A stretch of 64,000 bases of DNA from Monocercomonoides exilis PA203 (Eukaryota > Protista > Preaxostyla): contig LSRY02000003.1 in assembly GCA_001643675.2 (NCBI GenBank), positions 2,418,001-2,482,000 on the forward strand, written 5' to 3'. The notes under the pieces are model-generated. The model saw only the letters and a program-made list of their open reading frames with translations, did not search any database and had not been told where the DNA came from. Shown here piece after piece: positions 3,620 to 63,273 of the stretch; positions within the stretch are counted from its first letter, which is position 1; each line of letters starts with the position of its first letter. A program made the position numbers and the translations under genes.

Positions 3620-5849
3620 CGTTAACAGTATCATCATCCCCTCTCTCAACAGCCCATCCACATCCCTCTCTGCCTTCAATGCCTCTTTCCTCCACCAAAC
3701 ACGCTCTTCACCAAATGCTGCTGTTGAACACATTGGAACTGAATCTCAAAGAGAGAAACCTGGTAGACTGACTTCGTTTGATGTTGAAAGTCATCGCTTC
3801 GAGTGGTGTGAATGGAATAATTCAAATGGTGGAACTAGCCATGGAGGCGCACTTTATGTTAATTGCGTTAATGCAAACCTCACAATCATTTCGTGTTCAT
3901 TCAATAAATGCTCATCCAATGATCATGCTGGAGCGTTATATTGCGGAAATTTGCTGAAAATAAATGTCACAAAATCCAATTTCACAAGTTGTTCGGCATT
4001 ACATGGAGGTGCAGCACACTTGTACTATCCTCAATCCAATTCTGTTTGGAAATTTTCAGAAAATATAGTGGAAAGTTGTTCAATAACATATTGGTGTGGA
4101 ACTGGCTGGTATTTCTGGCTCAATGATATGCCATCAAATGCTCAATTCTTGTTCACAAACTGCAAGTGCATCGCAAATTCTGGCAACGATTCAACTGGCT
4201 CTCTCACGTTTCATTGGCCTCCGAATAACAAGCCCAACCTGTTTTCAATCGTTGAGTGTCAGTTCATCAATAACAAATTAACTTCTTCTTCCACATGGGG
4301 CGGAGCCGGAATATACTTTGATGGAACTTACTCTTGGATGAATGGAATAAAATTCATCACATTCTGTTTCTTCGATGGCAACACTGCGACGAATGGCAGA
4401 GGAAATGATGTGTTCTTCAATGGCAGCAGCATCACCCAATCCCCATTTGAGAATTGTGGCTCAACAACCCTATCGAAAAGGGTCTGGAATAACAATACAG
4501 CTGACAATGCTGTGTACAATGGCTGGCTCCCCCTAATCGCACAGAACAAAGTCGTTGCAAATGGTGGAACTGATGTCGATATCTGTGGCAGACCCCAACA
4601 GACCCCATGTGCCACCATCGAGTATGCCCTCACTGGCTTCATTTCCCTCCTCCAAGACGCCTCCCTCACCCTCCTCAGTTCAACATTTGTTCCAACTCAA
4701 ACACTCACTTTCAGCGCGGTTGATACCATAATCACTGGAAATGGCACAACTGCCACCACCATCGCCTCCAGTGGCATTCCCCAACCACCAATCTCATATT
4801 CACAGTCATCACAATCAACGTCATCATTTTCATCATTTTCATCTGCATCTTCTTCACCAGATCCATCTGCCTCGTCTGCCCTCTTCCAACAGATCCAGGG
4901 CTTCCTCACAGTCTCTGCCCTCGCCATCGCCCACAACTCCTCAAATCAAATCACCCCCATCCTCTTCCACCTCTCCGGTAACTCCCCTTCCCTCAACCTC
5001 AACACAACCACCATCACAGGAACAACCTCCATAACAATAAAAACTCCCCTCTTCTTCCTCACTGCTGGCTCCCTCGCCCTCAACCACACAGCAATCACCA
5101 GTCTCACCCTCAGCAGCCAAAGCATCTTCCACCTCACCTCCCTCACCGCTCCCCTCACCCTCAACTCCTCCAACATCACCCACATCATCTCCACTGCCGC
5201 CCCCACCAGCTGTGTCCTCTCCTCTGCCACCTCCCCTGCCCTCTCCCTCTCCCTCGCCAACTGCACCATCACCAACATCAACTCAGCTCCGCAAAACCAA
5301 CAGACTGCCACCAATGGCGGATGCATCTCATTCGCCTCATCTGCCTCTGCCAACTCATTTTCTGTGAGTGATTCCACCTTCTCCAGCTGCTCTGTGAGCG
5401 AGGATACAAGTTCTGGAGGAAGAGGCGGTGCTCTCATGATCGAGTACAAGGATGATTCACAAGTGTCAGAATCCTCCTTTTCCGTCGCCAATATCGTGTT
5501 TTCAGCCAACAAGGCCTGTGTCGGAAGAGATATGTATTTTGTGTGTAAATCATTTGTCGCTTCTGTGAAAGAGCCCTTGTTCGCCTTCATGAGAAGCATC
5601 ACTCAGAAAGACAACTCGGCTGTTGGACATGACAGAACAGAAGCACTTGGCGATTGGGATGTCGACTCATTCATATTTCTCAACGGGTATACAGCTGACA
5701 ATGCATGTGTGGATAGAATACTTGGCATCAAAGAAATGTATTGCTGGCTATCAAAGATGTCCTGCAAGAGCACACGCAATGCGATGGGTCTTCTGAAGAA
5801 GGTGCAGATCATAAGGCAGAAATCATTTCATCAGCTGACTTGTCGGTGA
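3620..5849 (+). pseudogene. Beta-helix family copy A: 5'-truncated open frame with core plus C-terminal Ser/Thr-rich extension
   Basis: Frame open from ~3507 with no ATG before the core. Motifs LNSPSTSLSAFN, EWCEWN, repeated GGA/FxxC, NGRGNDVFF and CGRPQQTPCATIEYAL. The 3' end looks degenerate after ~5650. Confidence 0.75.
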
Positions 5850-5899
5850 ATTTATGTGCAAGTGACGGTAAAATCGAAGAAAGTTGGGGAGATGGCACA

Positions 5900-6900
5900 C
5901 AAAATTGAAGAAAACATCTCATTTTTGCATTTGATGAAATCAACATTGCCTGTCGGGCATTTATTCTCTTCTTTCATAGAATTATCCATTAAATTTGCCT
6001 TTTCAAATAAATAAGTTTCCCTCATCGTTTCATCTTCTGAGACTTTTTGAAGGCATGTGGCCTTGCGAAATCTCTCGAAAACCATCCTTGCAACTGTTTG
6101 TTCAAAGAAATCTTTTCCAATCTTGTTCCTTCTTCTTCCTGTAATTCTTTCAATCTCAAAATAAATAATGCAGAGGCAACCTTCATGGATTGTGTGCCCG
6201 ATGATCGGCTATTCTTGATTTGACATTGAACCATTTCATTTGTAAAATAATTTTTAAAGATATTCCGTAAAACAACAAATATGCCTTTTATCTTTCTGAG
6301 TAAGAATGAAAGATGATGCTCGGCCCTGGATTTAACGGGAGTTGAATGAAATAGAAATAGGAATATTTTTAATTCGTTCATCGAAGAAGGCGTTGAAGAA
6401 GAAAAGGAGGGTCACAATTGTTGAAATGAAGATAGATGCTGTGCGAATGTGTGAACGAATGAGGAAGAATGAAGTTGAAGTTGAAGAAGGGGACGAAAGA
6501 GACGAAGAAGAGGAAGAAATGGTTGAGTGAAGAAGATTTTGTGTGTTTTTGGCTATGCGATTCATAACAGGCGTGCTTGTCGCTGAATAAACAGGTGAAT
6601 TGTGAGAAGGCGAATTTTGTGTTTGTAAATCAAGAAATGAGGAAGATGGTTGATTGAATGAAGGAGGATTATCTGAAGAAGAAGATGATGATCCCACGAT
6701 GACCACGAAGATGAAGTTCAAGTCGAAAAAATGTGAATATATGTGGTAATAGGGAAATGCGCAATCAGTCAATTGACATTCCTAAAGAAGACGTTGAGAT
6801 TAATTTGGGTGAAGTCGTTGATTGGGCCAAATATCGAATTCAATAAGTTGATTTGACAAAGAGCAAACAATCGTTATCGAAATATTTGTTGAAGGCCGAA
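5900..6900 (-). pseudogene. Degenerate companion gene/repeat convergent with the beta-helix copy; also at 10100-11200 (+), 17450-18400 (-) and 38340-39560 (-)
   Basis: Shared block like TTCATTCAACTCCCGT.AAAT.CAGGGCC.AGC.TCATCTTTCATTCTTACTCAGAAAGA, more diverged in the 38-39 kb copy. Frames are interrupted by stops. Confidence 0.5.
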
Positions 6901-7419
6901 GAAAATTAATTGATGAAAGATGACATCCTCAGTTCGTTTCTGCCTTTTTGAAATTGTTCTGCGCTTCACTGAGAAACCAAAAATGAAAATATTTCTTAAT
7001 TTCCTTTCCTTTCCATTCCCCTCTTCCATTCAACCCCCAAAATCATCAGAAAATATCATCCCTTCCTTTTCTTTATCTTTCCCATTCTCTTCCATAAAAT
7101 CTTTTCTTTTAAAAAAACACCCTTTTCCATTTGAACACTTCAGAATATTCTTCTTCTTTCAAGCTTTTGCCCTCTTTTCCTTTTTTTCAAATTCCATATC
7201 TCCAATCAACAATAATCACCTTCTTTATCGTCCCCAACTTTTTCTCTACATATTTTCTACATTTTCCTCTACAAATCTCTCCCTATCCTTCCCCACCCCC
7301 TTTGTCTCAGAATTTCTTTCATTCAAAAATCATTCTTGAAGCATTAACATTCTCAAAAATATACTCAACCCCCACCTTCTCTCACAAATAATCCTCTTCC
7401 ATCACTTGTATACGCCTTA

Positions 7420-8500
7420 TCCCTCATGTGCCTGGTGTTGATGAAATAAACGTGATATACTTCTTTGGGTGGTTGAGAATATTATTAAAGGAGAGGATCA
7501 TGAGAAAAACAAAAAAAACACATCCTGACAGGCAACACAATGTGTACGGGCTGAAAAGACCCTCCAGTAGGATACACGATGTATTTTGTGGAGGTGCATT
7601 CAGTGCTGAAATTTGACCATTCTGAGACTGAAATAAAGAGATTGGTTTTTTGAATGATGTTGGCTGTGGAAATGAGGCTGTTTGGCAAAAAACAGTCGAA
7701 GCGCAGTTTGGTCTTTATTTATTTTCTATATATGAATATTTATCTGTTGATTGTTTTTGTGTTTCTTTCAGGGCAGGAGGTGGAAATGAATGAAAATGAA
7801 TGAAAGCGGGATATCTTGTTGTGCAGGGTGACCACAGAGTTGGGAGAGCGAATTCATATGGAAAGTGCCCAGGGTGAAGGGATTGGGAAGGGAATTGGAG
7901 ATGATATTTTCAGATGAGAAATAGGATTATTTTCAATGATGAGAATGGAATTTGAGCAAAATGCATAAATCTCACATTTTTCAGAAGGACCAGAAATCGA
8001 TGCATTTGATGGATAAATGACTTATGGAAAGGATGGTTTGCGAATCAGATGATGAAACATTCGAAAACGAAAGGAATAATGAAATTGATAAAGAAAACAG
8101 GTGCCAACGGGATAAAATATAGTTATTGACTTGAGCATTGGTTCTGAAGGTTTGCTGATATATTTTTTGAAGTGATTGTTATTTTGTTTTTAAGAATGCT
8201 GAAAGAATGAGGGATTAGGTGGCTTTGAAGAAGAAAGAGAAAAGCAGGGAAGGAAAAATACAGACAGACATATGAAATTCAAGATATTTCGAAGATGCCT
8301 GGCATTAACCTTTGGCAAAGAATTATTTTTGAGGGAAGATGTTTTGAGTGAAAAAAGGGAAACGAAAAATTGAAAGAAATGGAATGAAAAAGAGATTGAC
8401 GCGTGCTTAGTATTTATTGTTGGAGAGAGAGAAAGAGATTGAGCTGAAAGTGAAAAGGATTCAGATGTTTCTCCTCTGCAGAAGAAAAAGAAACAGAAGA
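7420..8500 (+). pseudogene. Degenerate coding-like segment with an apparent GT-AG intron; duplicate at ~18970-20060
   Basis: Coding-like composition, GTTTGG...TTTCAG intron-like block at ~7706-7770, and many stops or frameshifts in both copies. Confidence 0.3.
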
Positions 8501-8960
8501 AGAGAATTTCAATGAATTTCTACGTTGATATTTATTGACTCCCATCTTCTCAATTTTCAACAATTAATCGTCTCATTCAATCCATTCATCATCATTACCA
8601 TCTTCTTCTTCTTCTTCTTCTTCAAATATATCAACAACATTTCACACAGCTTCTTCTTCATTATCATCATTCACATCATCTGATTGATTTTCTTCATGAT
8701 CTGTTTCATCATCAGAGATCATGAATGAAATGAAGAAAAAGAAGAAAATTTGCAGCTGAAGGAAATACTCTCAAATTAAAATGAGAAAAAGAAAGAGAAA
8801 GAAGAGGAGAAAGAGAAAGAGGGCTTTTGAATGAAAGGAAGAAGATATTTTTGATTTGAAATTTGAGTTGGGAGTTGAATTTGAAAGGAGAAGAAAGAAC
8901 TGTCAAAACAAAGAAAAGTATTTGGATAAATAGAGGATAAATTTGAAAAGTGGAACAACA

Positions 8961-10067
8961 TCAAGCAAGATGATGAGACGTAGAAGAAATCAAAAACATG
9001 TTAAGAGAAGAAAATAGAAAAGGCAAAAATGGATGGAAAAGAGAAGATAGTGAGAAAGGAATTCCATTGGAAGAATATGAAAAGAAAAGCCAAAACCTGT
9101 CATTTTTCTCAACGTTATCAGCAGTACCAGCTTTCCACACTCTTTTTGTTGGGGTTGTTGAATCACAATTCTCAAACGGAGATTGGGTGATGGCATTACC
9201 ACTGAAGAACACATCGTTTCCCCTGCCATTTGTGGCTGCGTTGCCATCGAAGAAACAGAATGTGATGAATTTTACTCCACTCATCCAGGAAAAAGGAGGA
9301 TAAAAACACATTGCGGCACCTCCATATGTGGAAGAGGCAGTCAGATTGTTGTTTATGAAGTGGCAATCATTGATTGAATACTGACTTGGTTTGTTGCTTG
9401 GAGGATGATAAAATGTGAGAGAACCAGCTGCATCTCCACCAGAGTTTGAAATGCACTTGCATTTGGAAAACAAGAATTGACCGTTTTCTGGGAAATAATA
9501 CATATTAAAATACCAGCCAGTTCCACACCAATCAGTTATTGAACAATTTTCCACTCTGTTTTCCGAGAATGACCAATCAGAATTTGATTGAGGAGCCCAA
9601 GAAGTGACTGCTCCACCATGAGCAGCTGAACAGCTGGTGAAGTTGGATTTTTCAATGTTTAATTTCAATAGTTGCCCACAGTATAATGCTCCTGCTTCCC
9701 CAGTAGTTGAACAATTGCGAAAAGAACAAGATTCTATTGTGAGATTTGCGTTTGTGCAGTTAACTATCAGCGCACCTCCCCAGGCACTTCCGCTATTAGA
9801 ATCATTCCACTCGCACCATTCAAAGCGATGGCTGTTCTCATCAAATGAAGTCAGTCTTCCAGGTGATTTTCTGTGAGTTTCATTTCCTACATATACAACA
9901 GCAGCATTTGGTGAAGAGCGTGTTTGGTGGAGGAAAGAGGCATTGAAGGCAGAGAGGGAAGTTGATGGGCTGTTGAGGTTGGGGAGGATGGCGCCATCGA
10001 TAGGGTTGTGGGTGAAGACAAAGATGGTTGAGTAGATGGAGAAGGAGGGATTGGAGGATTCTTCTTG
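8961..10067 (-). pseudogene. Beta-helix family copy B: ATG-less open core cassette; family homology ends ~9105 (ADNVEKN)
   Basis: Manual translation is open from the TGA at ~10068 through THNPIDGAILPNLN, EWCEWN and GRGNDVFF. No ATG before the core. Confidence 0.75.
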
Positions 10068-11205
10068 TCAGAAGAGCACGGAAACAAAGTTGAAAAACAA
10101 GAAATAACGATTTCAGCGAAACTCTCTGTTCAATTTGTTATCGTTCATTTCCGCAAATCTCGACCATCAATCAACTTGTTCTATTCGTTCATCATCCTCG
10201 TCTTCGTCTTCGTCGTCTTCGTCGTCTTCTCCTCCTCCTCCTTCTTCTTCTTTTCTTCTTCTTTTCTTCTTCTTCTTTTTCTTCACATTTTTAGTCTTCT
10301 TCATTAATATTTTTTCTCACTCCCTTCTGGGTCAGAGCATCGATCTTCAAATGCATTTATGCTATTCAATTCTGCAGAGCTACCAAATTAAGCCGAAAAT
10401 TGTTTCATTTCCTTTCCTTCGTCTCTGCAGTCAATCGATAAAAGAGCTTTCTTTTCATTTTTCAATCACGATTCCGACGAAGAAAATAAACTATCTGCTC
10501 AAATTCAGCTCATTTCATTTCCGTTGCATTCTTCTTCGATTTCTTTGATGATCAACAAAAATGATACTGTTTTTTTCATTTCATTCAACTCCCGTCAAAT
10601 TCAGGGCCAAGCCTCATCTTTCATTCTTACTCAGAAAGACAAAAGGATTATTCATTCTTTCACAGAATAACAGCTAATGTTATTTTACAAAGGAAATTGT
10701 TCAATGTTTAACCAAGAGAAGCTGATCATCAGGCATTCAACAGAAAACGGAGATTGAATCTGACTTTTTTGATTTTGAAGATCAAGCATCTGAAGTGAAA
10801 AGGAATGGGCATTGAAGCAATTCATTTATGAAATGGATGTGTTCCTAAATAGCCTTCTGCAGATTACACAGATACGAAACTGGAGCAAATTGTTGAAAAT
10901 GAAAAGAAAAGGAAAATTTAGAAGAGCATGTTGATATGCCTGAAGAAATCCTATTTGAAGAGATGAAAGCGATGAATCTTTTTTCTTGAGCTCAATTCAT
11001 ATTTGATGAAAAGGAGAAAATAGAGGAAGAAACGAAGAAGAAATGTTTTTATTTGAGCTGATGTTATGCTTTTTGAAAAAATAAGCGATGATATAGACTT
11101 CAAATGAAAAGAAGATGAAATCTCAAGAAATTTTCAAAGATATGGAAAATGGTGAAAATTGGAAACTGGTTGGAATTTTAATGAAATTACAAATAGGATA
11201 TAATT

Positions 11206-12305
11206 TCAAGTGATTTTTGTGTCAACCTCGCTGAAAGTGAGTGTTTGAGTTGGAACAAATATTGAGGAGAGGAGGGTGAGGGAGGCGTCTTGGGGATCTG
11301 TCATGCGAACAAGAGCGTGTTCTATTGTTTTGCATGGACTGAGTTGTGTGATTCCGCAGAGATCGGTGTTTGTCCCATTATTTGACACGATTTTGAATGT
11401 TGTTATGAGAGGAAGCCATCTGTTAAACTCAACATCATCAGCAGTTCCTGAATTCCAGACTCTTTTTGCTTGGGTTGTTGATCCACACTGATTGAATGGT
11501 GATTGGGTGATGCTGCTGCCATTGAAGAACACATCATTCCCTCTTCCATTTGCAGCTGTGTTTCCATCGAAGAAGCAGAATGTGATGAATCTAATTTCAT
11601 TCATCCAAACATATGTCCTGGTGCAATGAATGCCAGCGCCACCATAAATGGATGAAGCATTCAGTTTATTATTTAAGAACTGGCACTCTTGGAGCAAGCA
11701 CTGTTTTGGCTTTTCAGGTGGAAGCCAATTGAATGAGATTGCACCAGTCGCATCACCGCCAGTATTTGCAATGCAAACACAATTTTTGAATAGGAATTGA
11801 CTGTCTGATGTCATGTTATCGAGAACGATTTCCCAGCCTATGCTCCGCCAGTCTGTAATCGAGCATCTTTCGACTCTGTTTTGTTGAATTGTCCAAACAG
11901 AACTGGGTTGGGACCAGCCAACATAAGCAGCTCCGGCATGTGCAGCTGAGCAACTTGTGAAATTGGATTTTGCGATGTTGATATTCAACAAACTATGACA
12001 ATGCAACGCTCCGCCATATTCATTTGTTGAACAATTGAAGAATGAACACGACGTGATTGTGAGGTTAGCATTTGTACAAGTTACTGAAAGTGCTCCTCCA
12101 TTATTATTTCCTCCGCTGATTGAATTATTCCACTCACACCACTCAAAAAGATAGCTATTCAATTCTGTAAAGGATAATCTTCCAGGTGACTTTCTGTAAG
12201 TTTCATTTCCAATTTCCTTCACAGGATCATTTGGTAAAGATCGAGTTTGGTGAAGAAAAGAAGCATTGAAGGCAGAGAGAGAAGTGGATGGGCTGTTGAG
12301 GGAAG
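11206..12305 (-). pseudogene. Beta-helix family copy C: ATG-less open core cassette, the most divergent
   Basis: Homology runs from LNSPSTSLSAFN to FSEVDTKIT*. The ORF-track start is TTG in non-homologous sequence. Confidence 0.75.
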
Positions 12306-14949
12306 TGAAGAAATAGAAAGGAGTGAATGGAAAGAAAGAGAATGAATAATGCAATTAAATAAAATTGAGAATTTGCTTCAAAATATGAAAAGTGCTCAAG
12401 ATGAATATTTTCAGCATTTATTTGCATATAGTGTTGAGATTTTCAATTATTTTATCACAAACAATTTTCGATGAAATTTCTATGATGGCAAATATGAATT
12501 TCTTTTTGTTTCTCTTTTTGTCAAATCTTTTTAGAATTGATATCCTTTTGATTTCTGCAACAAATTGGAAAATCATAATTTTCTTTTTCACCCACTCATC
12601 AAAATACCTTTTGTATTGTTTTCTGAATGATCTTTTGGTAAATCGAAAATACCTATTTTGTTAAGAATGTTCTTCTTTTGTTTTGTTCTTCAGATAACAC
12701 AATTATCGGTATTGTTTTGCAACCAGATAATGAAAAATTGATTTTTAAAAACAATTATTTATTTTTGATTTAAAAACGAATCAATAGTCAAGTTCAACAA
12801 TAATTTGATAATCGAAAGGTTTTTTCTAAAAAAATCACAGTTATTCACTGGGAAAATATGTAAATTTGAATGAAAAATTTGGTATTGAAGAACTTCACTG
12901 ATTTTGATAATTTCTTCGTTTATTCACTTTTCGATTCTGTATTATTGGAATCATTTTTCAGAAAAACCAAGAACAAAGGATTCTCAAAAACAATGGATTC
13001 TCAATTTTATGTCGAAACAATCCAGTGATGTTTTGATTGATAGGGTGAGTTTATTCAAAGATGTTTCCACAAAATCATTCTTTTCAACTGAATAAAAAAA
13101 TATGAATTAATTATTTACATTCCAGTTATCATTTCATGAATATCCAATTAATATTTATCATCGCCTTTTTTGAATTCTTTTTCAATCGAATGTTATCACA
13201 GGTTCAAATATTCATTATCACAATTATTGTTCTTGTGAAATCCTTTTTTGACAAAAAATTTTTGTCTGTTCTTCTTCAAATGATTCGTTGTGAAGGCCAA
13301 GATTTTTTTCATATTCTGAACGAGAAAAGTAATATTCTCCATTATCACAGTTGTCTGTCCTTTACTACAACAGCTCAATACTGTGTGATTATCTTTGAAA
13401 TCATATCAATTGTCAATCTTTTAGTGTCATCCTTCAATTGTTTTTCAGACATTGTTTCTGGTAATGTGAATTTTTGAAGTGATGAACATTTCGAATAAAG
13501 ATAGAAAAATATTCAAAGAATGGTGAAGTCAGAATCGAATCTAATCACATCAGTTTTTGCACAGCTTAATGCGACTATATTCGATTGTGATGATATACGA
13601 TGCTGCTTAACACAGAAAAATATAAAAATTAATTAATTTATTTATTAAATTTGGTTCGTATTTTAAATTATTGAAAATTTATCATTAAAACGCATTTTTC
13701 ACTTGCGAAATCAATTTTTTCATTAATACACATTATTTAGACTTTTTTTAACATAATTTTGAAAAGAGAAAAATTGTGATTTTTGATCAAAAAACTGATT
13801 TTTCATTGAAAAATGAACCCATTAAAAAACAAAATACATATGAATATATTCAGCCCTGTGATTATTTGCGATGGAAAATGAATGAAAAAAAGAAAAAATG
13901 TCGGTGCATTGAAAAATTCGACTAAAACCGATTTCGATTTTATAAGATGAGAATATATCCGGCTTAGACTGTATTCCACTTTTATATTGCTGATTTTTTC
14001 CTTTTTGAAGAAAACAAAGTTGTAATTAATAAATATTTTTCTTTCGAATATTGAAAGACAAAAGATTAGTGATATTGGATCGAATAAAGATAACACTCAA
14101 AATGACAAAAGTTGTTTTCTTTTTATTCAATAAATTTCCAATAAAAACCTTTTTTTTTTCTTTGAGTTTCAAATAATAAAAGTCAAACGCATTGTAGAAA
14201 TGTTTGTGAAGCTTTTCCATTTCTTTTCTTTTTATGCAATTCCAAAAAAACAAAATCATTCATTTCATTTGAATATATCGTTTTGTTTACAAGAACATAA
14301 TTGCTTTTTTAATCAAAATGAAAACGTCTTATTTGATTGGCCAATGCAAATACAGAATCAAACATCAATCAATATTCAAATTGTTTCATTTTCCAGATAT
14401 TCTCATGAGTTTTAGAAAAATGATAAACAGTGGAAATATTCACGCCAAATGTTAATAAGAAAATGATTTTTCAGAATTAAATAATAAAGTCATCCTTTAA
14501 TTCTCTTTCATCAGTTGAATTCAAATAAAGTTATTCTTTCACAAATGAATGAAATGAAAAAATGAAATGATTTGTAAACACTTCTTTCCGCTGAGTTCTT
14601 TCCAGAAAATGAATACTGAATATGTGATTGGAACATTTCGATTTCTTGTTGAATTTTGTGTTTTCAGTTTTCTCAGAACTAAAAATTTTCTGATAATTTG
14701 ATATCATTGATTTTTGATGAAAACGCGAAAATGAAACAAAATGAAATTTTAATTATTGATTCAAAAATTCATTTCTATAATTTTTTAATTTTCATTTTCA
14801 TTGCAGATAACACAAGGCAATTTCTTTTCATCAAATGGAATGATTTAAAGGAAAAGTGAAACAATTTGAGCAATTTCATTTTCTTTAACACAAACATACA
14901 CAAAAGAATTTTAAAAATTTCTCTTTTCACTCTTCCTATACTCTCTTTT

Positions 14950-35280: not shown

Positions 35281-35335
35281 ATTTTATTTTATTTTATTTT
35301 ATTTTATTTTATTTTATTTTATTTTATTTTATTTT
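35281..35335. repeat. (ATTTT)n microsatellite
   Basis: Directly visible. Confidence 0.9.
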
Positions 35336-35792: not shown

Positions 35793-35908
<116 letters not shown>

Positions 35909-40277: not shown

Positions 40278-40321
<44 letters not shown>

Positions 40322-45100: not shown

Positions 45101-45426
45101 ACAGTGCCTTTCGAGAGATTTTGCAACTTCATGTGCATTCAACGAGTCGCGAAAAATAAAAAGAGAAGACGAACTGAATTTGAAGGAGAAGTACATTCAA
45201 ATGAGAATTTACGAAAGCGGGGCATGAATAGCATGCAGACAAATTGGAATGGAAAAAATGAAGAAATTATAATTTATGTGAAACTACAAGATATCATCGA
45301 AGAAATACTCTTTTGAAGAAAGGAAAAAGATAATACCTTCGCACTGAGGGCTGACTCGAAATTGAAGAAACAAAATTAGAGAAACTTATGAGGATATATT
45401 TTTTCTGCGTTGATGTTATTCTTTTT

Positions 45427-49713: not shown

Positions 49714-49717
<4 letters not shown>

Positions 49718-49776
<59 letters not shown>
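49718..49776. repeat. Poly-T tract (mirror poly-A at ~58934-58986)
   Basis: Directly visible. Confidence 0.95.
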
Positions 49777-50654
49777 CCTGAGAAAAACCAACAATTTTAA
49801 AAAATTTTGCTAGGAAAAGGATAAAACATTTACCAATAATTCAAAATTCTCATGACAAAAATTTTTGCACAATTTTTAATCAATTAACTTTAATTAAATA
49901 TTAATTTATTACTATTCTTTTTCACACTTTCACATAAATTATAACTTTCACTAAAAATGTGCAACAAGATTGTTTAATTTGTTTGTTAATGTTTTTGAAG
50001 AATTGTTTTCTGTTTTGCATTTTTATTAATATTCATTTTTGAAAAGAATAAAACTTCAGTGTGTATTAATATTGGAAAAAATATTATCTACAATAGACAT
50101 ATTTCATGATTCTCCATATTGATTCTTGTAATTTGCAATAAAAAATTTATTCATTTTTGTTAAGAATAGTTTGTTTCGACAAAAATAAAAATATTGCGAG
50201 TTTTAAAAAATAAATTTGAATCAAGGAAATATTTTCCATGAATAAAGAACAAAATTCTTTCTTGTTACATATATTAAAAATGATTTCAAAAATTATAAAT
50301 TATTTTGTTTTCTGTATCCTAAATTTGTTTCTTTGTTTTCATTTGAAAGTTGCTCCTCTCCTTTTTGTGAAAGTTTCTTTGGATGAATAAAAAAAATGCA
50401 CGTCATTGCTATTCATTTTGATGGTTCTGATTAACTTCCTCGTTTTTTAACATTCATCATCGTAATCATCACTATCTCATTCTTTTTCTTTCTTTTCTTT
50501 ATTGAATTCTTCGTCTTCTCCTCTTTATTATTTCCCCTCCTCCTCTTCTCATCTTTTTTGCTGTTTCAATTTCTATTTCTTTATCTTTATCTTATTCTTA
50601 TTCTTATTCTTATTCTTATTCATATTCTTATTCTTATTCTTATTCTTATTCTTT

Positions 50655-52240: not shown

Positions 52241-53646
52241 GGTTGAAATAAGTTTGTAAAAAAATATAAGAAAAAAATGAAAATATAAAAATTTTTCACA
52301 AACGATAAATACAACAATTTTTTAAAGATGAAAATTTATATAAAGACATTTTTTAAAATTAAAAATACAAACATTTGAAAAAATGGACTGTTGACTTAAA
52401 TCACTTCAGCGACAGACAGTGACGTGAATTCTGTGGTATATATTCTTTAAAGAAATGATCACGACACAACCCATTGTTTCATAAAAAATTGAAAATGAAC
52501 GTATGAAAAAAAAAAATTAAAATCAATTATTAAACAAAAATAAAAATATTTTACCACTTATCAATTATTCTTTATGTTATCAGTTTCAAACAAAAAAACA
52601 ACATAAAAATGAGTGAATAAAATATTTTTTCAGTCATATCGCGTCACTCCAATAATGTTCACGTCAGAAGGCATGCGACGCAGATGTTTATTCATATCTG
52701 TAAACAAACGTCATTGACATACAAGCAAAATGTTTTGTAACCTTTCATGTATTTAGAAAAATAAACACTTTTCTTTCAAATTATTTGATCACAGAAAGTT
52801 TATCTTGGATGCATAATTCTTCAATGAAAATGCCTGAAGCCAAATATTTGGCATAAGTGTAACAAACTACCTCTTTCAATTAAACAACTTTTTTCGTTTC
52901 AACAACATATTAATCAATAACATAAAAAATTAACACATTTGGGTGGAATAACTTTTTGAAATGTCAACGAAAAATTTCAAAAAAGAATTGTTGTGATCTA
53001 TACCATAATTAAATCCTTGTTTATATCTTTTTCGTTAAAAACGTTAATGATTGTGATTTGAAAGTTTATTGATGTTCTAATTACTCAATACTTGAAATGT
53101 CACAAATAAAGTTTGAAATTGAACAATCTTTATCATTATTTATGTTGTATTTTTTCTGTTTATATTGATGGAATTCTTGGAGTCACATTCAGTTCGTTTA
53201 TAAAAATGCCAATTCAATTATTAATAAACGAATGCATTGGAGCTCGAACAAGTTATACTTGTTTTCATATTTTTTTTAACAAAAATTGTTGTTTGTTAAT
53301 TGAACTTCTTTTTTTCTGACTGTTTTTCACACTGAAATACGGGCAATTATTTTTTAATATTTGTGAATAATATTGGATCAACGTTTTCTGAATATGTTTG
53401 TTGTTGTTAATTACGCTGTAGTGAAGTTGTCACATTGAGTTTTGAAATTTTTTCAAAATAACCAAAAAAATGATCAGCAAAAGTGATTTTGACTTTTTTG
53501 TTTCTTCATAAAGTTTCAATGAAAAGAACAAACAGTTGTTTTCAGAATGAAAACATATAATGAAATTTTTTGGAAAGAAGAATGAAGATATTTTGAATTT
53601 TTCTTGTGATATGAAAAATACAGTAATTCAAAATTCTCATTCAATC

Positions 53647-53678
<32 letters not shown>

Positions 53679-54555
53679 GTTAAATTTAGAAAGACAATTT
53701 AATACAAATCCATCACTGCAAACAGAAAAGCAATCTAACAACGCAAATAATATATTTTCTTTCTCCTTCAATCTCACCTTTTGCCTCTCATACTCCTTTT
53801 CAGCCTCTTTTTCTGATCCAATATGCAATAGAATCAAAAGAGGATCTCTTTGAATTATGCTATATAATGTAATATCAATCAGAGAAGTATTCAAAAATGT
53901 GGGTTTGAATAAAAAAGCTGTCGATTAGAGGAGGTTGTATCAGTTTGAGGAAGGAAGAAGGTTCATTTCGTCAATGAGACACTTCATGTTCTCCGCAGTT
54001 AATGTTCTATCCACAATTCACTGAAGCGAATTTTTTACGTGAAAAAGTTAGGAAGAATGATGTACATGAAAGACTCAGAGCAAGGCATGTTCGCAGCTGT
54101 CTCTCATAACAAAGTTGGTCATACTCAAGGTGCAACTTGGAGGATACGCTTGTTAAGCTGGAAAAGCTGGAGATACATTTTTCTGTTGTTGAAGTTAATG
54201 ATTCGCAGGAGCTTGGTTTCGTTCAGTCAGATTGAGCCTGTGAAGAAGATGAGTCGAACTTCCAAGAAGTCTTTTTCGATAAAGAAAATGGAATAATCAT
54301 TCAAAGGCATGCGCATCAAAGGTGAGACGAGGTTGACAGGAGGAAAGAAAAGATAACTGAGAAGTCGATGAATGGATATTGAAGATCTCGTGGAGAGAAA
54401 TGAGGAGAAGGCGGAGAAGAGGAAGTTGTTGAGGAGGAAGATGAGGAAGATGAGGAAGATGAGGAAGATGAGGAAGATGAGGAAGAAGGAGAAGGAAATG
54501 ATGTTGATCGTAATGGTTGTGTTTGTGGTTGTAATTATGGTCAGAGTTTGTCACT

Positions 54556-55285
54556 TAAGGTAATGGTGGAGGTTGAGCCATTTCCTGTGATTTTAGTGTC
54601 AACAGCATTGAATGTGAGTGTTTGAGTTGGAATATATATTGAAGTTAGGGGGGTGAAAGAGGCGTTTTGGGTATCTGTCATGCGAACAAGAGCGAATTCG
54701 ATTGTTTTGCATGGACTGAGTTGTGTGATTCCGCAGAGATCGGTGTTTGTCCTATTATTTGACACGATTTTATAAGTTGTTATGATGGGGAGCCAAACAT
54801 TATATGCATCGCTATCTGCGGTTGCTGCATTTCACATTATTTTTGTTGGATTTATTGTGTCATACTTATTGAATGAAAATTGGGTGATGTTGCTTCCATT
54901 GAATTAGACATCATTCCATCTTCCATTTTTGGCAGCGAAGCCATCCAAGAAACAGAACGTGATGAATATTACACTATTCATTTTAGTGAAAGTGTTTGTG
55001 CAACACAGGGCGGCTCCACCATTGGAAGTTGATGAACTTGTCAATTTATTATTGATGAAGAGACACTCAACGATAAAAAACATGTTGGGCTTGTTATTCG
55101 GAGGTTAATGAAATGTGAGAGAGACAGCATAATCACCATATGAGTTTGGAATGCACTTGCATTTTGAAGATAAACATTGAGCACATGTTGGAAAATCAAC
55201 AATGTTAAAATGCCAGCCAGTTCAACACCAGTTTGTCATTGAACAACTACCCACTCTGTTATCTGAAAACGTTGAATTAGAAGTG
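54556..55285 (-). pseudogene. Beta-helix family copy I: decayed, in the inverted-repeat spacer
   Basis: Homologous to the 3' half of the core (GW.F, KCKCI, GRWNDV*, TDLCGITQLSPCKTIE), with in-frame stops. Confidence 0.85.
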
Positions 55286-56464
55286 GATGGCGATCAAGCT
55301 GACAATTCACTCATTTATCTACTGTCAAGAAACTTGAAAAATTGTATTTTGTTTTTTCAGCATTTTTCAAAAATTTCTAGATCATGAATGTTAAACCTTT
55401 GTCTTTTAGAATTCAGTGACATTTTAGAATCAACAGTATGTCATCGAACATTGCTCTCTCATGATTATATTGTAAGGCATTTTGTTATGATTGATCTTTG
55501 AAGGGATAATACTTAATTTACAGAAGTTATTGCGATATTTTATATTTCAGTAATAACAACATAAATAATGATAAAGATTGTTCAATTTCAAACTTTATTT
55601 GTGACATTTCAAGTATTGAGTAATTAGAACATCAATAAACTTTCAAATCACAATCATTAACGTTTTTAACGAAAAAGATATAAACAAGGATTTAATTATG
55701 GTATAGATCACAACAATTCTTTTTTGAAATTATTCGTTGACATTTCAAAAAGTTATTCCACCCAAATGTGTTAATTTTTTATGTTATTGATTAATATGTT
55801 GTTGAAACGAAAAAAGTTGTTTAATTGAAAGAGGTAGTTTGTTACACTTATGCCAAATATTTGGCTTCAGGCATTTTCATTGAAGAATTATGCATCCAAG
55901 ATAAACTTTCTGTGATCAAATAATTTGAAAGAAAAGTGTTTATTTTTCTAAATACATGAAAGGTTACAAAACATTTTGCTTGTATGTCAATGACGTTTGT
56001 TTACAGATATGAATAAACATCTGCGTCGCATGCCTTCTGACGTGAACATTATTGGAGTGACGCGATATGACTGAAAAAATATTTTATTCACTCATTTTTA
56101 TGTTGTTTTTTTGTTTGAAACTGATAACATAAAGAATAATTGATAAGTGGTAAAATATTTTTATTTTTGTTTAATAATTGATTTTAATTTTTTTTTTTCA
56201 TACGTTCATTTTCAATTTTTTATGAAACAATGGGTTGTGTCGTGATCATTTCTTTAAAGAATATATACCACAGAATTCACGTCACTGTCTGTCGCTGAAG
56301 TGATTTAAGTCAACAGTCCATTTTTTCAAATGTTTGTATTTTTAATTTTAAAAAATGTCTTTATATAAATTTTCATCTTTAAAAAATTGTTGTATTTATC
56401 GTTTGTGAAAAATTTTTATATTTTCATTTTTTCTTATATTTTTTTACAAACTTATTTCAACCTT

Positions 56465-58050
56465 TAAAGCACGCTCTTCACATAGACATGGAGCGGACAA
56501 AAGATGTGCTTATCAAAACTTAGACAATGGCAGGAGTTTAGAGGCTGAGGATCAGAAGCGAATAACGGTTCGGAGAAAATAGAACGTGTTGTTGCCTGCG
56601 CGGTGCTGAGAGAATTTTTTAGCAGGAAGGAGATGTTGAAAAGCACAGAGCAGCAGCAGGGTTTGTGGTGATTGAGTCACAGTTGTTAATATTTTCAATG
56701 ACATTTGAAAATGGAAATGTGAGATTGAGGAGGAAAGAGAGATGCGTGCTGGTGGTTGAGGAGTGTGTGGCGATTGGGGATGAGCTGAGACAGATCGATA
56801 TGCAGGTGTTCCAACAGAGGAGGGAGCGTGCGGAGGTGGGGAGCACAGCAGTGAGCGATATGTTTGGTCCGGGGAGCAGATGCGAGCTGAACAGGATGGT
56901 TAAACAGCAGGCGCAATTGGTATGTGTTTCTGCTCCGTGCTTTCGAACGTCAGCTGGACATGCAGCTGGGGGCAGGCGCGGCTGGAGTTCGTGGTGCAGG
57001 AGCTGGTGCAGTGCGGGCTGTACTTCCAGATAATTGTGCGTGGGGCAGATGGGGGCCAGCGTGTGAGGACATACAGTTTTGAGAGCACAGGGCAGAACAC
57101 GGAGCGGCGGGGGTTCGGGAGAATCGGGCGGGGGGTGATTGAGGAGAGAGGGGCAGATGAGGAGGTGCTGGCGAATGTGGTGTATTTGAGCGAGGAGCTG
57201 GCTGTGGAGGAGCGGAGAGGCGGGGAAGGGGGAGTGTGGAGAACAGGGGAGGAGACAGGGGAGGATGACGTAAGTGAAGGAAAAAAGTTCAACGAGACAG
57301 CAGCAATTACACTGGAAAGAGGAAAGGAAGGTATAGGCAGGGGGCAGAGCCTGCTTGAGCTGAATGGGAAGACGATCATACTGCATATTGAAGTGAGTAC
57401 AATGTGTGTAATAGTGGTGGTGATTACTGTGGGGTTCCACGTGCGAAAGCGTCGGCAGAGGAAGCAGCAGGATCAGAGACTTGTGCATCCCAAGGAGATG
57501 GCAGAGGAAAAGCAGAAGAGCAAAGTGTGGAGTGGATGCTGAGAAAACATTGAAGGAATTGAATGAAGAACTGGAGAAGAATGTGGTGAGGAAGGATGGA
57601 TGTTCATGATGAAAAAAAAGGGAATGGAGGATGTGGAAACGGAAGAGAGGAGGGGAAGAGTGGTGTTTAGAAAGAGGAAGATAATTATGAACATCAAACG
57701 AGAGAATTGTTTGGAGTTGCGAATTTGGATGTGGGACGGATGCTGGAGCTGCTTCACTGTGAGTAATACTCAAAGAAAGTTGTGTTTTGTGTGGTGCACG
57801 GGTGTTATCACATCCTGCGGAGCTGGGAGACGGAGGTGCTGCTTCCGAACATAAGCCAGCTGGAAGAAATGGTGAACGGGGAGGATGTGATGGCGTTGCG
57901 GGATGTGGAAAGCGACGAAGAGATGTGCAACCTTAAAGAAGCGGGATCCGCAGAAAAAAGGAGCTGGAGCTGTTCACGTGAATGGACTGCGTGGAAGTGA
58001 GGAGGAAAAGGGAGCGGAGGGCAAGTGCAGAGGCAGTGCGACTTGCGAAA
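56465..58050 (+). pseudogene. Mirror copy of the GC-rich degenerate membrane-protein fragment
   Basis: Matches 50655-52240; the difference noticed is a G-run length at ~57130. Confidence 0.4.
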
Positions 58051-58933
58051 AAGAATAAGAATAAGAATAAGAATAAGAATAAGAATATGAATAAGAATAA
58101 GAATAAGAATAAGAATAAGATAAAGATAAAGAAATAGAAATTGAAACAGCAAAAAAGATGAGAAGAGGAGGAGGGGAAATAATAAAGAGGAGAAGACGAA
58201 GAATTCAATAAAGAAAAGAAAGAAAAAGAATGAGATAGTGATGATTACGATGATGAATGTTAAAAAACGAGGAAGTTAATCAGAACCATCAAAATGAATA
58301 GCAATGACGTGCATTTTTTTTATTCATCCAAAGAAACTTTCACAAAAAGGAGAGGAGCAACTTTCAAATGAAAACAAAGAAACAAATTTAGGATACAGAA
58401 AACAAAATAATTTATAATTTTTGAAATCATTTTTAATATATGTAACAAGAAAGAATTTTGTTCTTTATTCATGGAAAATATTTCCTTGATTCAAATTTAT
58501 TTTTTAAAACTCGCAATATTTTTATTTTTGTCGAAACAAACTATTCTTAACAAAAATGAATAAATTTTTTATTGCAAATTACAAGAATCAATATGGAGAA
58601 TCATGAAATATGTCTATTGTAGATAATATTTTTTCCAATATTAATACACACTGAAGTTTTATTCTTTTCAAAAATGAATATTAATAAAAATGCAAAACAG
58701 AAAACAATTCTTCAAAAACATTAACAAACAAATTAAACAATCTTGTTGCACATTTTTAGTGAAAGTTATAATTTATGTGAAAGTGTGAAAAAGAATAGTA
58801 ATAAATTAATATTTAATTAAAGTTAATTGATTAAAAATTGTGCAAAAATTTTTGTCATGAGAATTTTGAATTATTGGTAAATGTTTTATCCTTTTCCTAG
58901 CAAAATTTTTTAAAATTGTTGGTTTTTCTCAGG

Positions 58934-58991
<58 letters not shown>

Positions 58992-60345
58992 CGTGCACTG
59001 AATGACTTTGTCTCGCCTTTTCCAAGGTGACGCAGATGTTTTGATAAAAAAATCCAATTTATTTTGAAATCTGACAAGTTTCAAATAGTTATTAGTGAAA
59101 CAAATTATTTATGATTTGTTCATCAAAAGCTTGGAAGTCCATATTTTTCCCCAAATAGTTTATCAATTTTGAATAATAAATTATGATAAAGATTATTATA
59201 CCAAATTTAATCATTAAATTTCTAACTTCAATAATTTTTGTTGTTATTTTTGAAATGACTTAAATTTGGGGGTGTGGATTATTGCAAGTTTTTTTCCCAT
59301 TTATTTATCAATCCATATTAAAATGTCTGAAATATAGTTATTACAGTTAAAGTCAATGCTTGAGATGAAAGAAAGGATATGGTCTATTGATAAGAAGTTA
59401 TCAATTTCAAGTGTTCATTTCCAAATATTCAAAATGAATTTTCAAACCGAAATGTTTGACAGACAAAATAGAATTTCAAAAATGAGGAAAAAAATGAAAA
59501 ACAATATATTCAAAAATTGAATTCATAAGCAATCAGTATTTTAGATTGTTTTGGTGTTTTTTGTTATTGAAAAAAAAATTCAATAAAAAGAAGTATTTTT
59601 CTGTCTTTAATATGGATGTTGCAGAAGCAGTGAAATCACAATCACCAATGGCGGTATGGGTTTGCCAATAATTTATTTTATTTATTAAAAAAAAAAATAA
59701 AATAAAAATAAAAACATCAAAACACTAATTCAAATAAATATCAATAATTGTTGCGAGGATTGAATATTCACAAAGATATCCACAATTATTCACGCTCCAA
59801 GAAAAATAACATTTTTGAAAAAATCAGAACAAACAAATAACTCCGTTTCGAGAACAACAACAATTAACAACACTTTCAAAATTCGACAATGGCAAACCAC
59901 AAGCTCACCATTTCATGCACAAAAATTCTCATTTCAAATTATTTTATTGTGCAACAAATACTAAGAAAAAGAAAAACAAAGAACAGATATTTTTTTATCA
60001 ATCTTTTTATGCCTTTACCACAGAAAGCACAATCGTTCAGAAGGCAAACAGAATGAAACTGCTCAACAAACACAAATGCTCTGAGCAAACACACTATTCC
60101 AATTTCAAACAGCACTCATTCTTTCGACAAAATAATTCACACTCTAATGAAAATCTTTTTCTTCTTCTCTTGCTGGATCACTCACTCATTCAAAAACAAT
60201 TTTCCAAAGAAAACCCCGAAAAAAAGCAATTATCATATTCAGATTCAAATAATGATCAATCTCTCATCTATTTCATAATCATCATTGTGAATGCACGCTT
60301 CACAAATATAACTCTATTCTTTTTCTATTGATTTATTCTTTTGCT

Positions 60346-61272
60346 CACCAAAAACCCCATCGATGGAGCCATTCTCCCCAACCTCAACAGCCCATCCACT
60401 TCTCTCTCTGCCTTCAATGCTTCTTTTCTTCACCAAACTCGATCTTCATCAAATGCACCTATCGTTCATATTGGAACTGAAACTCACAGAAAATCACTTG
60501 GAAGACTGTCTTCATTCGATGCAAGTAGCCATCGCTTTGAGTGGTGCGAATGGAATGATTCAACTGGTGGATCAAGTGATGGAGGTGCGCTTAAAGTCAA
60601 TTGCACAAACGCAAATCTCGAAATCACTTCTTGTTCATTCAACAATTGTTCATGCACCGGAGAGGGGCAAGGTGGAGGGTTATACTGTAATAGTTTGTTG
60701 AAAATTGATATTACAAAATCCAATTTCACAAATTGTTCTGCTGCTCATGGAGGAGCAGTTCATACAACAAATCCACAGCACAATTCTGCTTATTACCATT
60801 CAGAAAACAAAGTCGAAAATTGTTCAATATCTAGCTGGTGCGGAACTGGTTGGTATTTTTATATTGGTGCTTTTCCAGAAAACGGTCAATTCCTGTTTTC
60901 CAAATGCAAGTGCATCTCAAATTCAGGTAACGATTCCGCTGGTTCTCTCACATTCAATAATCCTCCACAAAACAAACCGAGTCAGTTTTTGGTCAATGAT
61001 TGTCAGTTCATAAATAACAAATTGACATCAAATTCAACTTCATGGGGAGGTGCTGCAATGTTTTTAGGAATACTTATTCTTGGATGAATGAAATAAAATT
61101 CATCACATTTTGTTTTTTCAATGGCAACACTGCCACAAATGGCAGAGGAAACGACGTGTTTTTCAATGGAAGTAATATCACTCAATCTCCATTTGAGAAT
61201 TGTGGCTCAACAACAGCATCAAAAAGAGTGTGGAATCAAGGAACAGCTGATAATGCTGAATATAATGGCTGA
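60346..61272 (+). pseudogene. Beta-helix family copy H' (mirror of H; -1 T frameshift at ~61061-61065)
   Basis: T5 here vs A6 at 47635-47640 in H. Confidence 0.75.
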
Positions 61273-61939
61273 CCGTAGCTTATCTTTCCTTCTCTAATTT
61301 TTCCAATGAAAAGTCTTTTCATGTCCCTTCTCTTTTCCTGTTATTATCTCTTTCTCCATTTTCTCCTCTTCTCTCATTCCTTCTTTTCTCTCAAATTTGA
61401 TAGTTTATTTCTTGAATCTTGTCATTCATCCTTGTTTGCTATATCGCTTCTCAAAATTACCCTCCGTTTATCCAAATACTTTTCTTCCCAAATTCAACAT
61501 TCAACTCGAATCTCCTCTTCGAAACATCTTCTCTCTTTAACACAAAAATCTCTTCAACCCTCTCAATCTCATTTCCATTTATCAATTATCCTAAAAATCA
61601 GAATCTTATTTCTCTTTCTCTTTCTCCTCTTCTTTCGTCTTCTTTCATTCTTCTTCCTCTCTTTCTTATTTCTGAATATTTCCTTCGGTTGCAAAAGTTC
61701 ATCTTTTTCTTCATTTCATTCACGATCTCTGACGTAGATATCAAATTTGAAGAAATTCAAAATAGATGAAGTGAATGATGAAGTGGAAGAAGAATTTGAA
61801 GAGCATGCAATGAGTTGGTGAGTTGATTGAAGCTGAGAATGATGAAGATAAATAAATAAACAAATACCGAGATATTTGATTTTCCATTTTTATCTGGTTT
61901 TCTTCTTTCATTTTTGTGTGTTCTTCTTACTAACAAAAT

Positions 61940-63273
61940 CCTCCAATTCAACCATTTTCCTCCACACTCACAACCCCATTGATGGAGCCATTCTCCCCAA
62001 CCTAAACAGCCCATCCACCTCTCTCTCTGCCTTCAATGCCTCTTTTCTTCACCAAACACGCTCTTCACCAAATGCTGCTGTCGTGCATATCGGATCTGAA
62101 TCTCAAAGAGCGAAACCTGGAAGACTGACTTCATTTGATGAGAACAGCCACAGATTCGAATGGTGTGAATGGAATGATTCAAATAGTGGAAGTGATAATG
62201 GCGGTGCACTTCATGTCGAGTGCACAAATGCCAATCTCGAAATCACTTCTTGTTCGTTTTTCAATTGCAATTGTCCAGGAAGTGATAGTGGTGGAGGGGC
62301 ATTATACTGTCATTACTTGTTGAAAATAAATATGGCAAAATCAAATTTCACGGGATGCTCGGCTGGCCATGGAGGAGCAAATTGCATCAGGTATCCTCAA
62401 ACGAATTCTGTTTGGACGTTCTCAGAAAATAGAGTGGAAAGTTGTAAGATAACATACTGGTGTGGAACGGGTTGGTATTTTGCGCTTGAAGGAATTCCAA
62501 CAAATTTTCAATTCTTGTTTTCCAAATGCAAGTGCATTGCTAATACAGGGGGCAATTCTGCTGGTTCTCTCACATTTAATGATCCCCCACAAAATAAACC
62601 AACTCAGTTTTTGGTTAATGATTGCCAATTTATAAATAACAATCTGACTGCATCTGCCAGTTATGGAGGAGCTGCCATCTATTTGGATGTCACTTACTCT
62701 TGGATGAATGGAATAAAATTCATCACATTTTGTTTCTTCGATGGCAACACTGCCACAAATGGCAGAGGAAACGATGTCTTTTTCAATGGCAGCAGTATCA
62801 CCCAATCTCCATTTGAGAATTGTGGCTCAACAACTCCAACAAAAAGAGTGTGGAATGCAGGAACTGCTGATAACGCTGCGTACAATGGCTGGCTCCCACT
62901 CATTGCCCAGAACAAAATCGTTGCAAATGGTGGAACTGATGTCGATGCCTGTGGCAGACCCCAACAGACCCCATGCGCCACCATCGAGTATGCCCTCAAC
63001 GCCTTCATCTCCCTCCTCCAAGACGCCTCTCTCACCCTCCTTTCCTCAACATTTGTTCCAACTCAAACACTCACTTTCTGTGCAGTTGACACAAAAATCA
63101 CTGGAAATGATGAAATTTGTCTGATTTCTTTATTATTCCTTCTATTTTCATCATATAAAACAGTTAATATTCTATCATTATTTCTTTTAATTTTTGAATA
63201 TTTTCCGTATCATTGCCAAATTCATGAGCTTTCATCCCATTTTCAAATGGCATATATGCTACTATTTGCTTAG
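61940..63273 (+). pseudogene. Beta-helix family copy G' (mirror of G)
   Basis: Protein identical to G except DVD vs DAD at 62941-62943. Confidence 0.75.

Follow-up and report, generated by a model that had tools for sequence, protein, structure and literature searches.

The 'functional pseudogenes' of Anaplasma marginale msp2/msp3, the vls system of Borrelia and ves1 of Babesia bovis all operate with one or a few expression sites, and the DNA of their flanks is almost identical. Members of the Trypanosoma brucei VSG archive are mostly broken by stops or frameshifts, and the ampliconic palindromes of the human Y chromosome undergo arm-to-arm gene conversion. Here we analyze a stretch of 64,000 nucleotides from the genome of Monocercomonoides exilis (contig C25, positions 2,418,001-2,482,000; hereafter, the window) that contains nine distinct copies of a beta-helix core. 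With a probability of roughly 0.55, these copies belong to a recombining, palindrome-rich array of truncated receptor-head paralogues that is possibly a germline reservoir of variants. An earlier interpretation of the window (the original prediction) viewed the copies as silent cassettes that are recombined into an expression locus.

Like msp2/msp3, vls and ves1, the window contains doubly truncated, start-less copies with open frames and segmental patches in common; in contrast to those systems, there are at least 90 full-length (FL) genes and about 17 leader-bearing short genes, and synonymous sites in the end blocks are free to vary. With the subtelomeric VSG arrays of T. brucei and the MSG arrays of Pneumocystis, it shares the scale of a chromosome arm and the mosaic evolution of the family. 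The cores in the window (copies A-H) are clean, unlike those of the VSG archive, and no 70-bp-repeat or UCS-like unique element was found here. Finally, the large inverted repeats, with arms that are more than 99.7% identical and carry multi-copy genes, resemble the human Y palindromes, whereas the cargo here consists of truncated modules, and it is the identity of the arms that suggests arm-to-arm conversion.

The window is located 66-130 kb short of the right end of C25 (2,548,433 bp). According to the genome paper, the assembly, which is based on Oxford Nanopore Technologies (ONT) reads and was checked with Illumina data, comprises 101 contigs with an N50 of 1,379,369 and a largest complete chromosome of 2.54 Mb (PMC8767320). 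The genome searched amounts to 82.3 Mb in 101 contigs, and all counts outside the window are taken from search tables and from 50 loci (denoted by L-numbers). Among the 91 best core matches genome-wide, 52 are found on C25 past the 1.5-Mb position, 51 of these in short frames and many as identical inverted pairs. The window belongs to an array of about 1 Mb that is located on the right arm of C25 and spans about 1.49 Mb to no less than 2.51 Mb. The total of 2095 core matches was rejected as a measure of copy number because internal repeats of the ectodomain match as well. All protein database matches are 'uncharacterized proteins' of M. exilis.

Truncated copies in the window

A tblastn search with an FL relative from C25 (L037:753-9890, 3046 aa), which serves as the FL reference and supplies the residue numbering ('FL aa') used throughout, identifies 11 family loci in the window, that is, nine distinct copies (A-I) and two palindromic twins (G' and H'):

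3507-5846, plus strand: copy A, open frame of 780 aa (tblastn match 3612-5822); FL aa 356-1086, core and extension, no early ATG
8964-10067, minus strand: copy B (tblastn match 9087-10046); FL aa 344-663, core only, no early ATG
11209-12354, minus strand: copy C (tblastn match 11203-12300); FL aa 367-734, the most diverged open copy, with 61% aa identity to FL
14889-17591, plus strand: copy D (tblastn match 14916-17591); FL aa 282-1160, open frame 14889-17219 (777 aa)
20690-22540, minus strand: copy E (tblastn match 20696-22558); FL aa 1-658, ATG at 22540, 617 aa
36961-38328, plus strand: copy F (tblastn match 37012-38304); FL aa 301-734, no early ATG
45430-46848, minus strand: copy G (tblastn match 45592-46761); FL aa 346-734 and flanks of its own
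47431-48369, minus strand: copy H (tblastn match 47431-48354); FL aa 355-661, stop at the breakpoint in common with B and E
54565-55287, minus strand: copy I, the sole decayed copy; FL aa 499-739, 53-54% identity, four stops, located in the 2.4-kb palindrome spacer
60347-61269, plus strand: copy H', palindromic twin of H that lacks one nucleotide in an A6/A5 homopolymer
61852-63270, plus strand: copy G' (tblastn match 61939-63108), palindromic twin of G, 1 aa different

None of the copies extends past FL aa 1160, and no transmembrane (TM) or kinase matches were found in the window by tblastn with L037, in agreement with the original prediction of nine distinct core copies, none of them full length. 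The core that is common to A-H comprises 307 codons, from the NPIDG/LNSPSTS block to the FITFCFF..GRGNDVFF..QSPF..VWN block, and is free of stops and frameshifts in all these copies, as had been claimed. Copy E consists of a signal-peptide-like leader, an N-terminal domain, a Ser/Pro-rich linker and the core, followed by a stop at FL aa ~658. That only E has an ATG and a signal peptide holds within the window but not genome-wide, given the approximately 17 copies of the E type. The other seven open copies (A-D and F-H) have their first Met 161-314 residues inside the open frame. The homology of copy D runs on, with stops, past the open frame to 17591, and an inverted twin of copy A, 100% identical to it, is located beyond the window (C25:2416103-2416303, minus strand). 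The 1-nt difference in H' is either a frameshift or an assembly error.

The searches recovered no window copy as an annotated protein; the 617-aa product of E is absent from the protein collection, and neither the fragments nor other open reading frames (ORFs) in the window have Pfam matches. The annotated short models outside the window (e.g., MONOS_18537, 7706 and 9953) start at an internal Met, lack a signal peptide and end at truncation points; these models are plain ORF calls on fragments. No gene is on record for the MONOS_18537 product.

The open-frame translations of G and H contain the sequence LLTK just upstream of the core (46780-46800 and 48355-48369, minus strand), and the DNA of G at this stretch contains a branch-point-like TACTAAC with no in-frame acceptor after it. 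A candidate intron with a mini-exon upstream of G (ATG..GTGAGT donor and TACTAAC box, identified by eye) was rejected: the join is out of frame and would remove conserved residues.

The full-length family and the fold of the core

Many of the genomic matches of copy G are in unbroken frames of 2500-3100 aa. The N-terminal part of the reference protein L037 consists of a signal-peptide-like leader, a Ser/Pro-rich linker (aa ~215-345) and the homologue of the window core (aa ~346-734); these are followed by a long repetitive ectodomain, a TM segment (~aa 2598-2621) and a Pfam match to PK_Tyr_Ser-Thr (E = 3e-9) that spans the C-lobe only. The window copies show 60-78% aa identity to L037 over 300-900 aa, which identifies them as homologs of the FL family; none of them has the complete FL architecture of a signal peptide, an ectodomain of ~2500 aa, a TM segment and a kinase-like tail.

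The catalytic-loop region of L037 (L037:8520-9887) reads LRDLSPHIVLL by eye, compared with HRDLKPxN, and the receptor tail of this protein may be a pseudokinase. In a paralogue on contig C17 (L034/L035), the cytoplasmic tail is 24-41% identical to the tails encoded on C25.

In the genome papers, the 'protein tyrosine kinase' (TKL-like) expansion is described as the largest gene family of M. exilis and overlaps with 28.9 Mb of unclassified repeats (PMC6759080, PMC8767320). The unclassified repeat makes up about 35% of the genome, and the link to kinase genes is drawn there only tentatively (PMC8767320). The giant beta-helix receptor-kinase-like family overlaps with this protein tyrosine kinase family: in the same genome, the FL relatives of these copies terminate with a TM segment followed by a PK_Tyr_Ser-Thr C-lobe, whereas the window copies are devoid of the kinase part. 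Text searches of both papers (PMC6759080, PMC8767320) found no mention of the truncated head-only modules, their open frames, palindromic blocks or mosaicism, and the terms 'pseudogene' and 'palindrom' have no occurrences in PMC8767320.

The core is predicted to adopt a right-handed parallel beta-helix fold, which is supported by structure modeling and is compatible with the beta-helix assignment in the original prediction. The AlphaFold2 (AF2) model of the core has a pLDDT of 75-94 at residues ~66-325, and VIA-align of this model yields Z scores of 15-18 over 230-265 residues, with all 50 of the top 50 matches being right-handed parallel beta-helices; Foldseek returns weak matches only (E of at least 0.03). 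A repeat of the GGA..F..N/C style is visible in the core consensus. Pfam searches assign copies A, D and G to no family and give only a sub-threshold match to Pentapeptide_4 for E, with no match of A, D, G or E to Chlam_PMP/Beta_helix. A profile built from 42 cores retrieves 2726 proteins at E <= 0.001, and the checked ones from outside M. exilis carry Chlam_PMP (PF02415) and Beta_helix (PF13229). Thus, the predicted fold is similar to that of the Chlamydia Pmp-type right-handed parallel beta-helix, and the two respective domains appear on distant profile matches, but the window proteins remain below the Pfam thresholds and the context is a eukaryotic receptor architecture.

The notion that the core is a uniquely hypervariable part of the FL proteins was rejected: among three FL genes, the core is 72-79% identical, similarly to several other ectodomain segments.

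Retention of the open frames

Copies B, E and H all break off at one nucleotide position (after AATGGCTG, FL aa ~661) and have about 550 nt of downstream flank in common, which provides an internal neutral control:

46870-47428, minus strand: non-coding flank of the B/E/H class downstream of the breakpoint, with homologues at 8540-9086 and 20100-20686

In this flank, the Jukes-Cantor (JC) distances are 0.34-0.48, with 6-9 gap events per ~500 nt, and 19 of the 23 gaps are not multiples of 3, in accord with the earlier observation that the neighboring duplicated sequence is decayed. The cores of the same three copies have JC distances of 0.27-0.34, 0-2 gap events, all of them multiples of 3, and no stops.

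A neutral-decay simulation and dN/dS estimates had been proposed as checks along with the original prediction, and neutral retention is rejected by the former. With the indel rate derived from the flank, the probability of at least 8 of 9 cores being open is 0.003 at 1.25% divergence per lineage and 6e-7 at 2.5%. The pairwise dN/dS is 0.23 for fragments, 0.25 for FL genes and 0.24 between the classes, and ranges from 0.24 to 0.32 in fragment-only cherries. The GC content at the three codon positions (GC1/2/3) is the same in fragments and FL genes, and the site-wise amino acid entropy is strongly correlated between them (r = 0.90). The substitutions that are private to fragments, 4.2 per core, include no nonsense changes among 105, compared with ~4.8 expected at a nonsense rate of 4.6%. 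The retention of the open frames is non-neutral.

Block amplification and mosaic cores

Self-comparison of the window reveals the following large duplications:

3632-10040 and 15164-21637: direct duplication of 6.5 kb, with the segment from A to B matching the segment from D to E; A and D are syntenic twins
44700-53148 and 55556-64000: arms (8.4 kb) of a large palindrome, with copy I in the spacer (53149-55555)
1-2336: second palindrome, with the center at ~1170; copy A and the upstream twin outside the window mark the minimum extent of the arms

The arms of the large palindrome are 99.75% identical; the 21 differences are mostly in the lengths of T or A homopolymers, along with some substitutions. 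The homopolymer differences between the arms, including the 'frameshift' of H', suggest residual long-read errors or slippage. No element common to the centers of both palindromes of the window was found at E < 1e-5.

Several copies have breakpoints and flanks in common. In addition to the B/E/H class, copies C and F have ~310 nt of downstream flank in common, and the tandem two-core block that consists of H and G recurs in L003, L007, L024 and L026/27. The G part of this block, together with the downstream flank, is found in L029, on another contig, and the flanks of G are present also in L003, L020 and other loci. The 5' junctions vary by class, all of them being located within or just past the Ser-rich linker, and the 3' truncation points map to FL aa ~661, ~734 and ~1160. 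These shared breakpoints, flanks and blocks imply that a few truncated ancestors were block-amplified into the array of about 1 Mb.

Within the amplified blocks, the cores differ more than their surroundings: over three block comparisons, identity is 87-100% for flanks and 62-83% for cores. In the comparison of the A-B segment with the D-E segment, the spacers are 84-100% identical and the cores 63-79%; in that of the H-G block with L003 and L029, the respective values are 87-100% for the flanks and 62-87% for the cores. The most variable 200 nt of G (46200-46400) are 99% identical to a non-syntenic core of the L003 block, whereas the identity of the G core to its syntenic counterpart is no more than 65-82%. 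Sharp blocks of 97-100% identity are present in pairs that are otherwise 50-80% identical, for example, E/L030, A/L020, F/L020, H/D and L021/L027 (360 nt in the latter pair). F and L020 contain 100% identical blocks in a copy that is ~80% identical elsewhere, and E has a block of ~150 nt, mostly 97-100% identical, in common with the ATG-less, G-type fragment L030. This combination of similar flanks, divergent cores and near-identical non-syntenic patches indicates that the cores are reshuffled by gene conversion.

Exact tracts common to fragments and FL genes are shorter than those among fragments. The FL gene L043 and the fragment L027 have a tract of ~240 nt in common at ~96% identity. Exact runs of at least 100 nt in the variable part are found in six fragment-fragment pairs and three pairs of closely related FL genes, the longest being 252 nt, compared with none among 575 FL-fragment pairs, the longest exact run of which is 77 nt. 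For the variable segments of two FL genes, the genome contains no match above 93%. In the core tree, which is star-like, the FL and fragment labels are not clustered (14 changes vs 16.4 for shuffled labels). Linkage among the variable sites decays within 25-50 nt, and the observed PHI-like value was reached in none of 300 permutations.

One intact FL gene (2914-aa frame) is located within the fragment array, at C25:1,902,292-1,904,223; it is the best FL match (83%) to the variable segment of G.

E-type copies and the predicted expression locus

The leader of E is present in ~17 copies, all of them on C25 between 1.49 and 2.44 Mb, with protein identities to E of 77-91% (86-91% among the 15 closest); the frames are open in 15 of the 17 copies and encode 612-836 aa. 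Copy E and L004 (C25:1545711-1549985), which are 890 kb apart, are 89-99% identical over 660 nt of upstream sequence, the leader, the N-terminal domain and the linker. Their cores are 61-81% identical, and the two copies are truncated at different points (class 661 for E and class 734 for L004). Given that the upstream region is conserved and the ATG and signal peptide are kept, expression of the E-type copies is possible, and this minority of the array may be expressed as short secreted proteins.

The RNA evidence comes from short Logan contigs of one small metatranscriptome study, which were compared with the region 16700-22700. Exact RNA contigs over the unique core of E have depths of 7-37; contigs over the non-coding spacer have comparable depths of ~5-25, with 0-3 mismatches. 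Very high depths are confined to the parts that are common with paralogues, and no GT..AG joints were seen in the RNA contigs on this region.

The one or few expression loci of the original prediction are not borne out by the genome-wide searches. Among the 150 N-terminal matches, ~90 fall within frames of 2000-3100 aa that have individual leaders. For the TM segment and kinase tail, almost all of the 93 best matches belong to 2000-4200-aa frames, which are distributed over many contigs. Accordingly, there are at least 90 intact FL genes with leaders of their own, one part of an outcome that the prediction itself had named as refuting, in addition to the ~17 E-type copies. The donor-like anatomy of the copies, which are ATG-less, doubly truncated and non-neutrally open, with conserved flanks, scrambled cores and mosaic patches, is supported; the mechanism that involves an expression locus is not. 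The conserved blocks at the ends of the core are conserved as protein only. At synonymous third positions, the FITFCFF..GRGNDVFF..QSPF block has a diversity of 0.29-0.38 and the 5' block one of 0.23-0.29, compared with 0.18-0.44 elsewhere in the core, and the end blocks were rejected as DNA-level recombination signals because the synonymous sites in them vary as in the rest of the core; being free at these sites, they are not DNA-level recombination guides. There appears to be no sign of a switchable, single-gene antigen system.

Origin and maintenance of the array

In the scenario that we favor, a few ancestral truncations of giant beta-helix receptor-kinase-like genes would have been amplified as multi-kb blocks, through direct and palindromic segmental duplication of 'head' modules. 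The core of ~300 codons, which is homologous to hundreds of paralogues, would be overwritten patchwise by ectopic gene conversion, yielding cores that differ more than the flanks, fine mosaics and an FL-like coding signature. The array would be at most a germline reservoir that swaps head variants with expressed genes over evolutionary time, and the open frames would be kept by exchange, weak selection on the fragments, or both.

Several observations weigh against this scenario. The fragments outside the window were sampled from top-scoring matches, so that the sample is skewed to intact copies. The ratio of nonsynonymous to synonymous private substitutions (N/S) is ~2.8 in both classes, compared with the neutral value of 3.4, and the recent changes look almost unconstrained or include sequencing errors. 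With dS at ~0.8, recurrent mutation adds violations of the four-gamete rule, and therefore the linkage test overstates recombination. The high identity of the flanks could reflect homogenization of the flanks instead of reshuffling of the cores. The best FL matches of the variable segments of G and A are only 83-85% identical (15-17% away), and at the rate that can be bounded here, conversion may not keep pace with the disruptions unless direct selection operates as well. The RNA contigs cannot separate transcription from DNA carry-over or cross-mapping. Passive overwriting would have to occur at a high frequency, yet G and A are 15-17% away from FL genes, which points to direct selection on the fragments, short-tract exchange, or both.

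Foremost among the alternatives, albeit unlikely, is a selected germline library of 'functional pseudogenes', in which short-tract conversion into the ~17 E-type genes and ~100 giant receptors would keep the heads open. Under this possibility, the array may represent a many-donor, many-acceptor form of receptor diversification that is housed in palindromes and differs from single-expression-site antigenic variation. To our knowledge, no system of this kind has been described for oxymonads.

Next in line, and slightly more doubtful, is the possibility that the modules are independent functional genes, translated with the help of an upstream exon, a non-AUG start or read-through and subject to purifying selection. 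The dN/dS values, the gap pattern, GC2 and the site-wise variability, all of which are indistinguishable from those of FL genes, are compatible with translation, and so are the E-type copies, with their ATG, signal peptide and mostly open frames (15 of 17, 612-836 aa); furthermore, annotators called some of the fragments genes (MONOS_18537, 7706, 9953). However, 7 of the 8 open copies lack an ATG or leader, the annotated short models begin at an internal Met without a signal peptide and end at truncation points, and no window copy is among the annotated proteins searched. The sole mini-exon and intron candidate, identified by eye upstream of G, would join out of frame, no GT..AG joints are present in the RNA contigs on 16700-22700, and the copies are found in both orientations inside palindromes.

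A programmed donor archive, in which silent cassettes are copied during clonal growth into E-type or FL loci and thus vary a surface or secreted beta-helix protein, seems improbable, and ranks below translation of the modules. The donor-like anatomy of the cores and the non-neutral retention of the frames are what such an archive would entail; the E-type 5' module that is 89-99% alike at a distance of 890 kb, next to cores that are only 61-81% identical and 3' ends of different classes, as well as the ~150-nt block of mostly 97-100% identity in E and L030, point in the same direction. Conversely, the presence of at least 90 intact FL genes and ~17 E-type copies does not amount to one expression site, the end blocks are not conserved as DNA, the two tested FL variable segments have no near-identical donor (none above 93%), and the E-specific RNA contigs are no deeper than those of the neighboring spacer.

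Still less credence is given to inert debris, that is, functionless pseudogene fragments that are open owing to their youth or to passive overwriting by intact paralogues. The flanks of some blocks are 95-100% identical, which implies recent duplications, private substitutions are few (4.2 per core), fragments do receive conversion tracts, and copy I shows that decay occurs. Nevertheless, the B/E/H class is old, judging by the flank distances (JC 0.34-0.48) and the frame-breaking gaps, and its cores are clean; in the simulation, neutrality is rejected once the divergence reaches ~1.25% per lineage, and no nonsense changes are found among the private ones, against ~4.8 expected. In addition, the nearest FL templates of the tested variable segments are 15-17% away, and in the window, the density of stops and frameshifts in the cores is already well below that in the flanks.

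Finally, it is very unlikely that the near-perfect palindromes, and hence some of the copies, are long-read assembly artefacts: the 99.75% identity of the arms, the mostly homopolymer differences and the ONT-based assembly (PMC8767320) would fit, but palindromic twins recur across the array with different spacers, the arms differ by substitutions as well, the assembly is described as Illumina-checked (PMC8767320), and only G' and H' would be removed, leaving nine distinct copies.

Other features of the window

Three additional open frames are present outside the family copies:

29982-33272, plus strand: open frame of 1097 aa, rich in Ser (30%) and Pro (10%), with extended poly-Ser runs as well as NQM repeats; no Pfam match above the threshold
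50772-51800, plus strand, and 56622-57932, minus strand: twin frames in the palindrome arms, of 343 and 437 aa, respectively, with a 1-nt indel at ~51568

The first of these could be a genuine gene of low complexity, or else repeat DNA that happens to be open. The only family similarity of the twin frames is a weak one, to the Ser/Pro-rich linker of the receptors.

Implications

M. exilis is a model eukaryote without mitochondria. A part of its 'unclassified repeat' is now explained as ordered arrays of truncated receptor heads, which are not junk-like in their decay and recombine patchwise. If it is true that the fragments feed expressed genes, the array would represent a new way in which a commensal protist of the gut diversifies its receptors or surface; otherwise, it would be a clear case of non-gene open frames that are preserved by family-wide gene conversion. 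Such preserved non-gene frames matter for annotation because several of the fragments are now called proteins.

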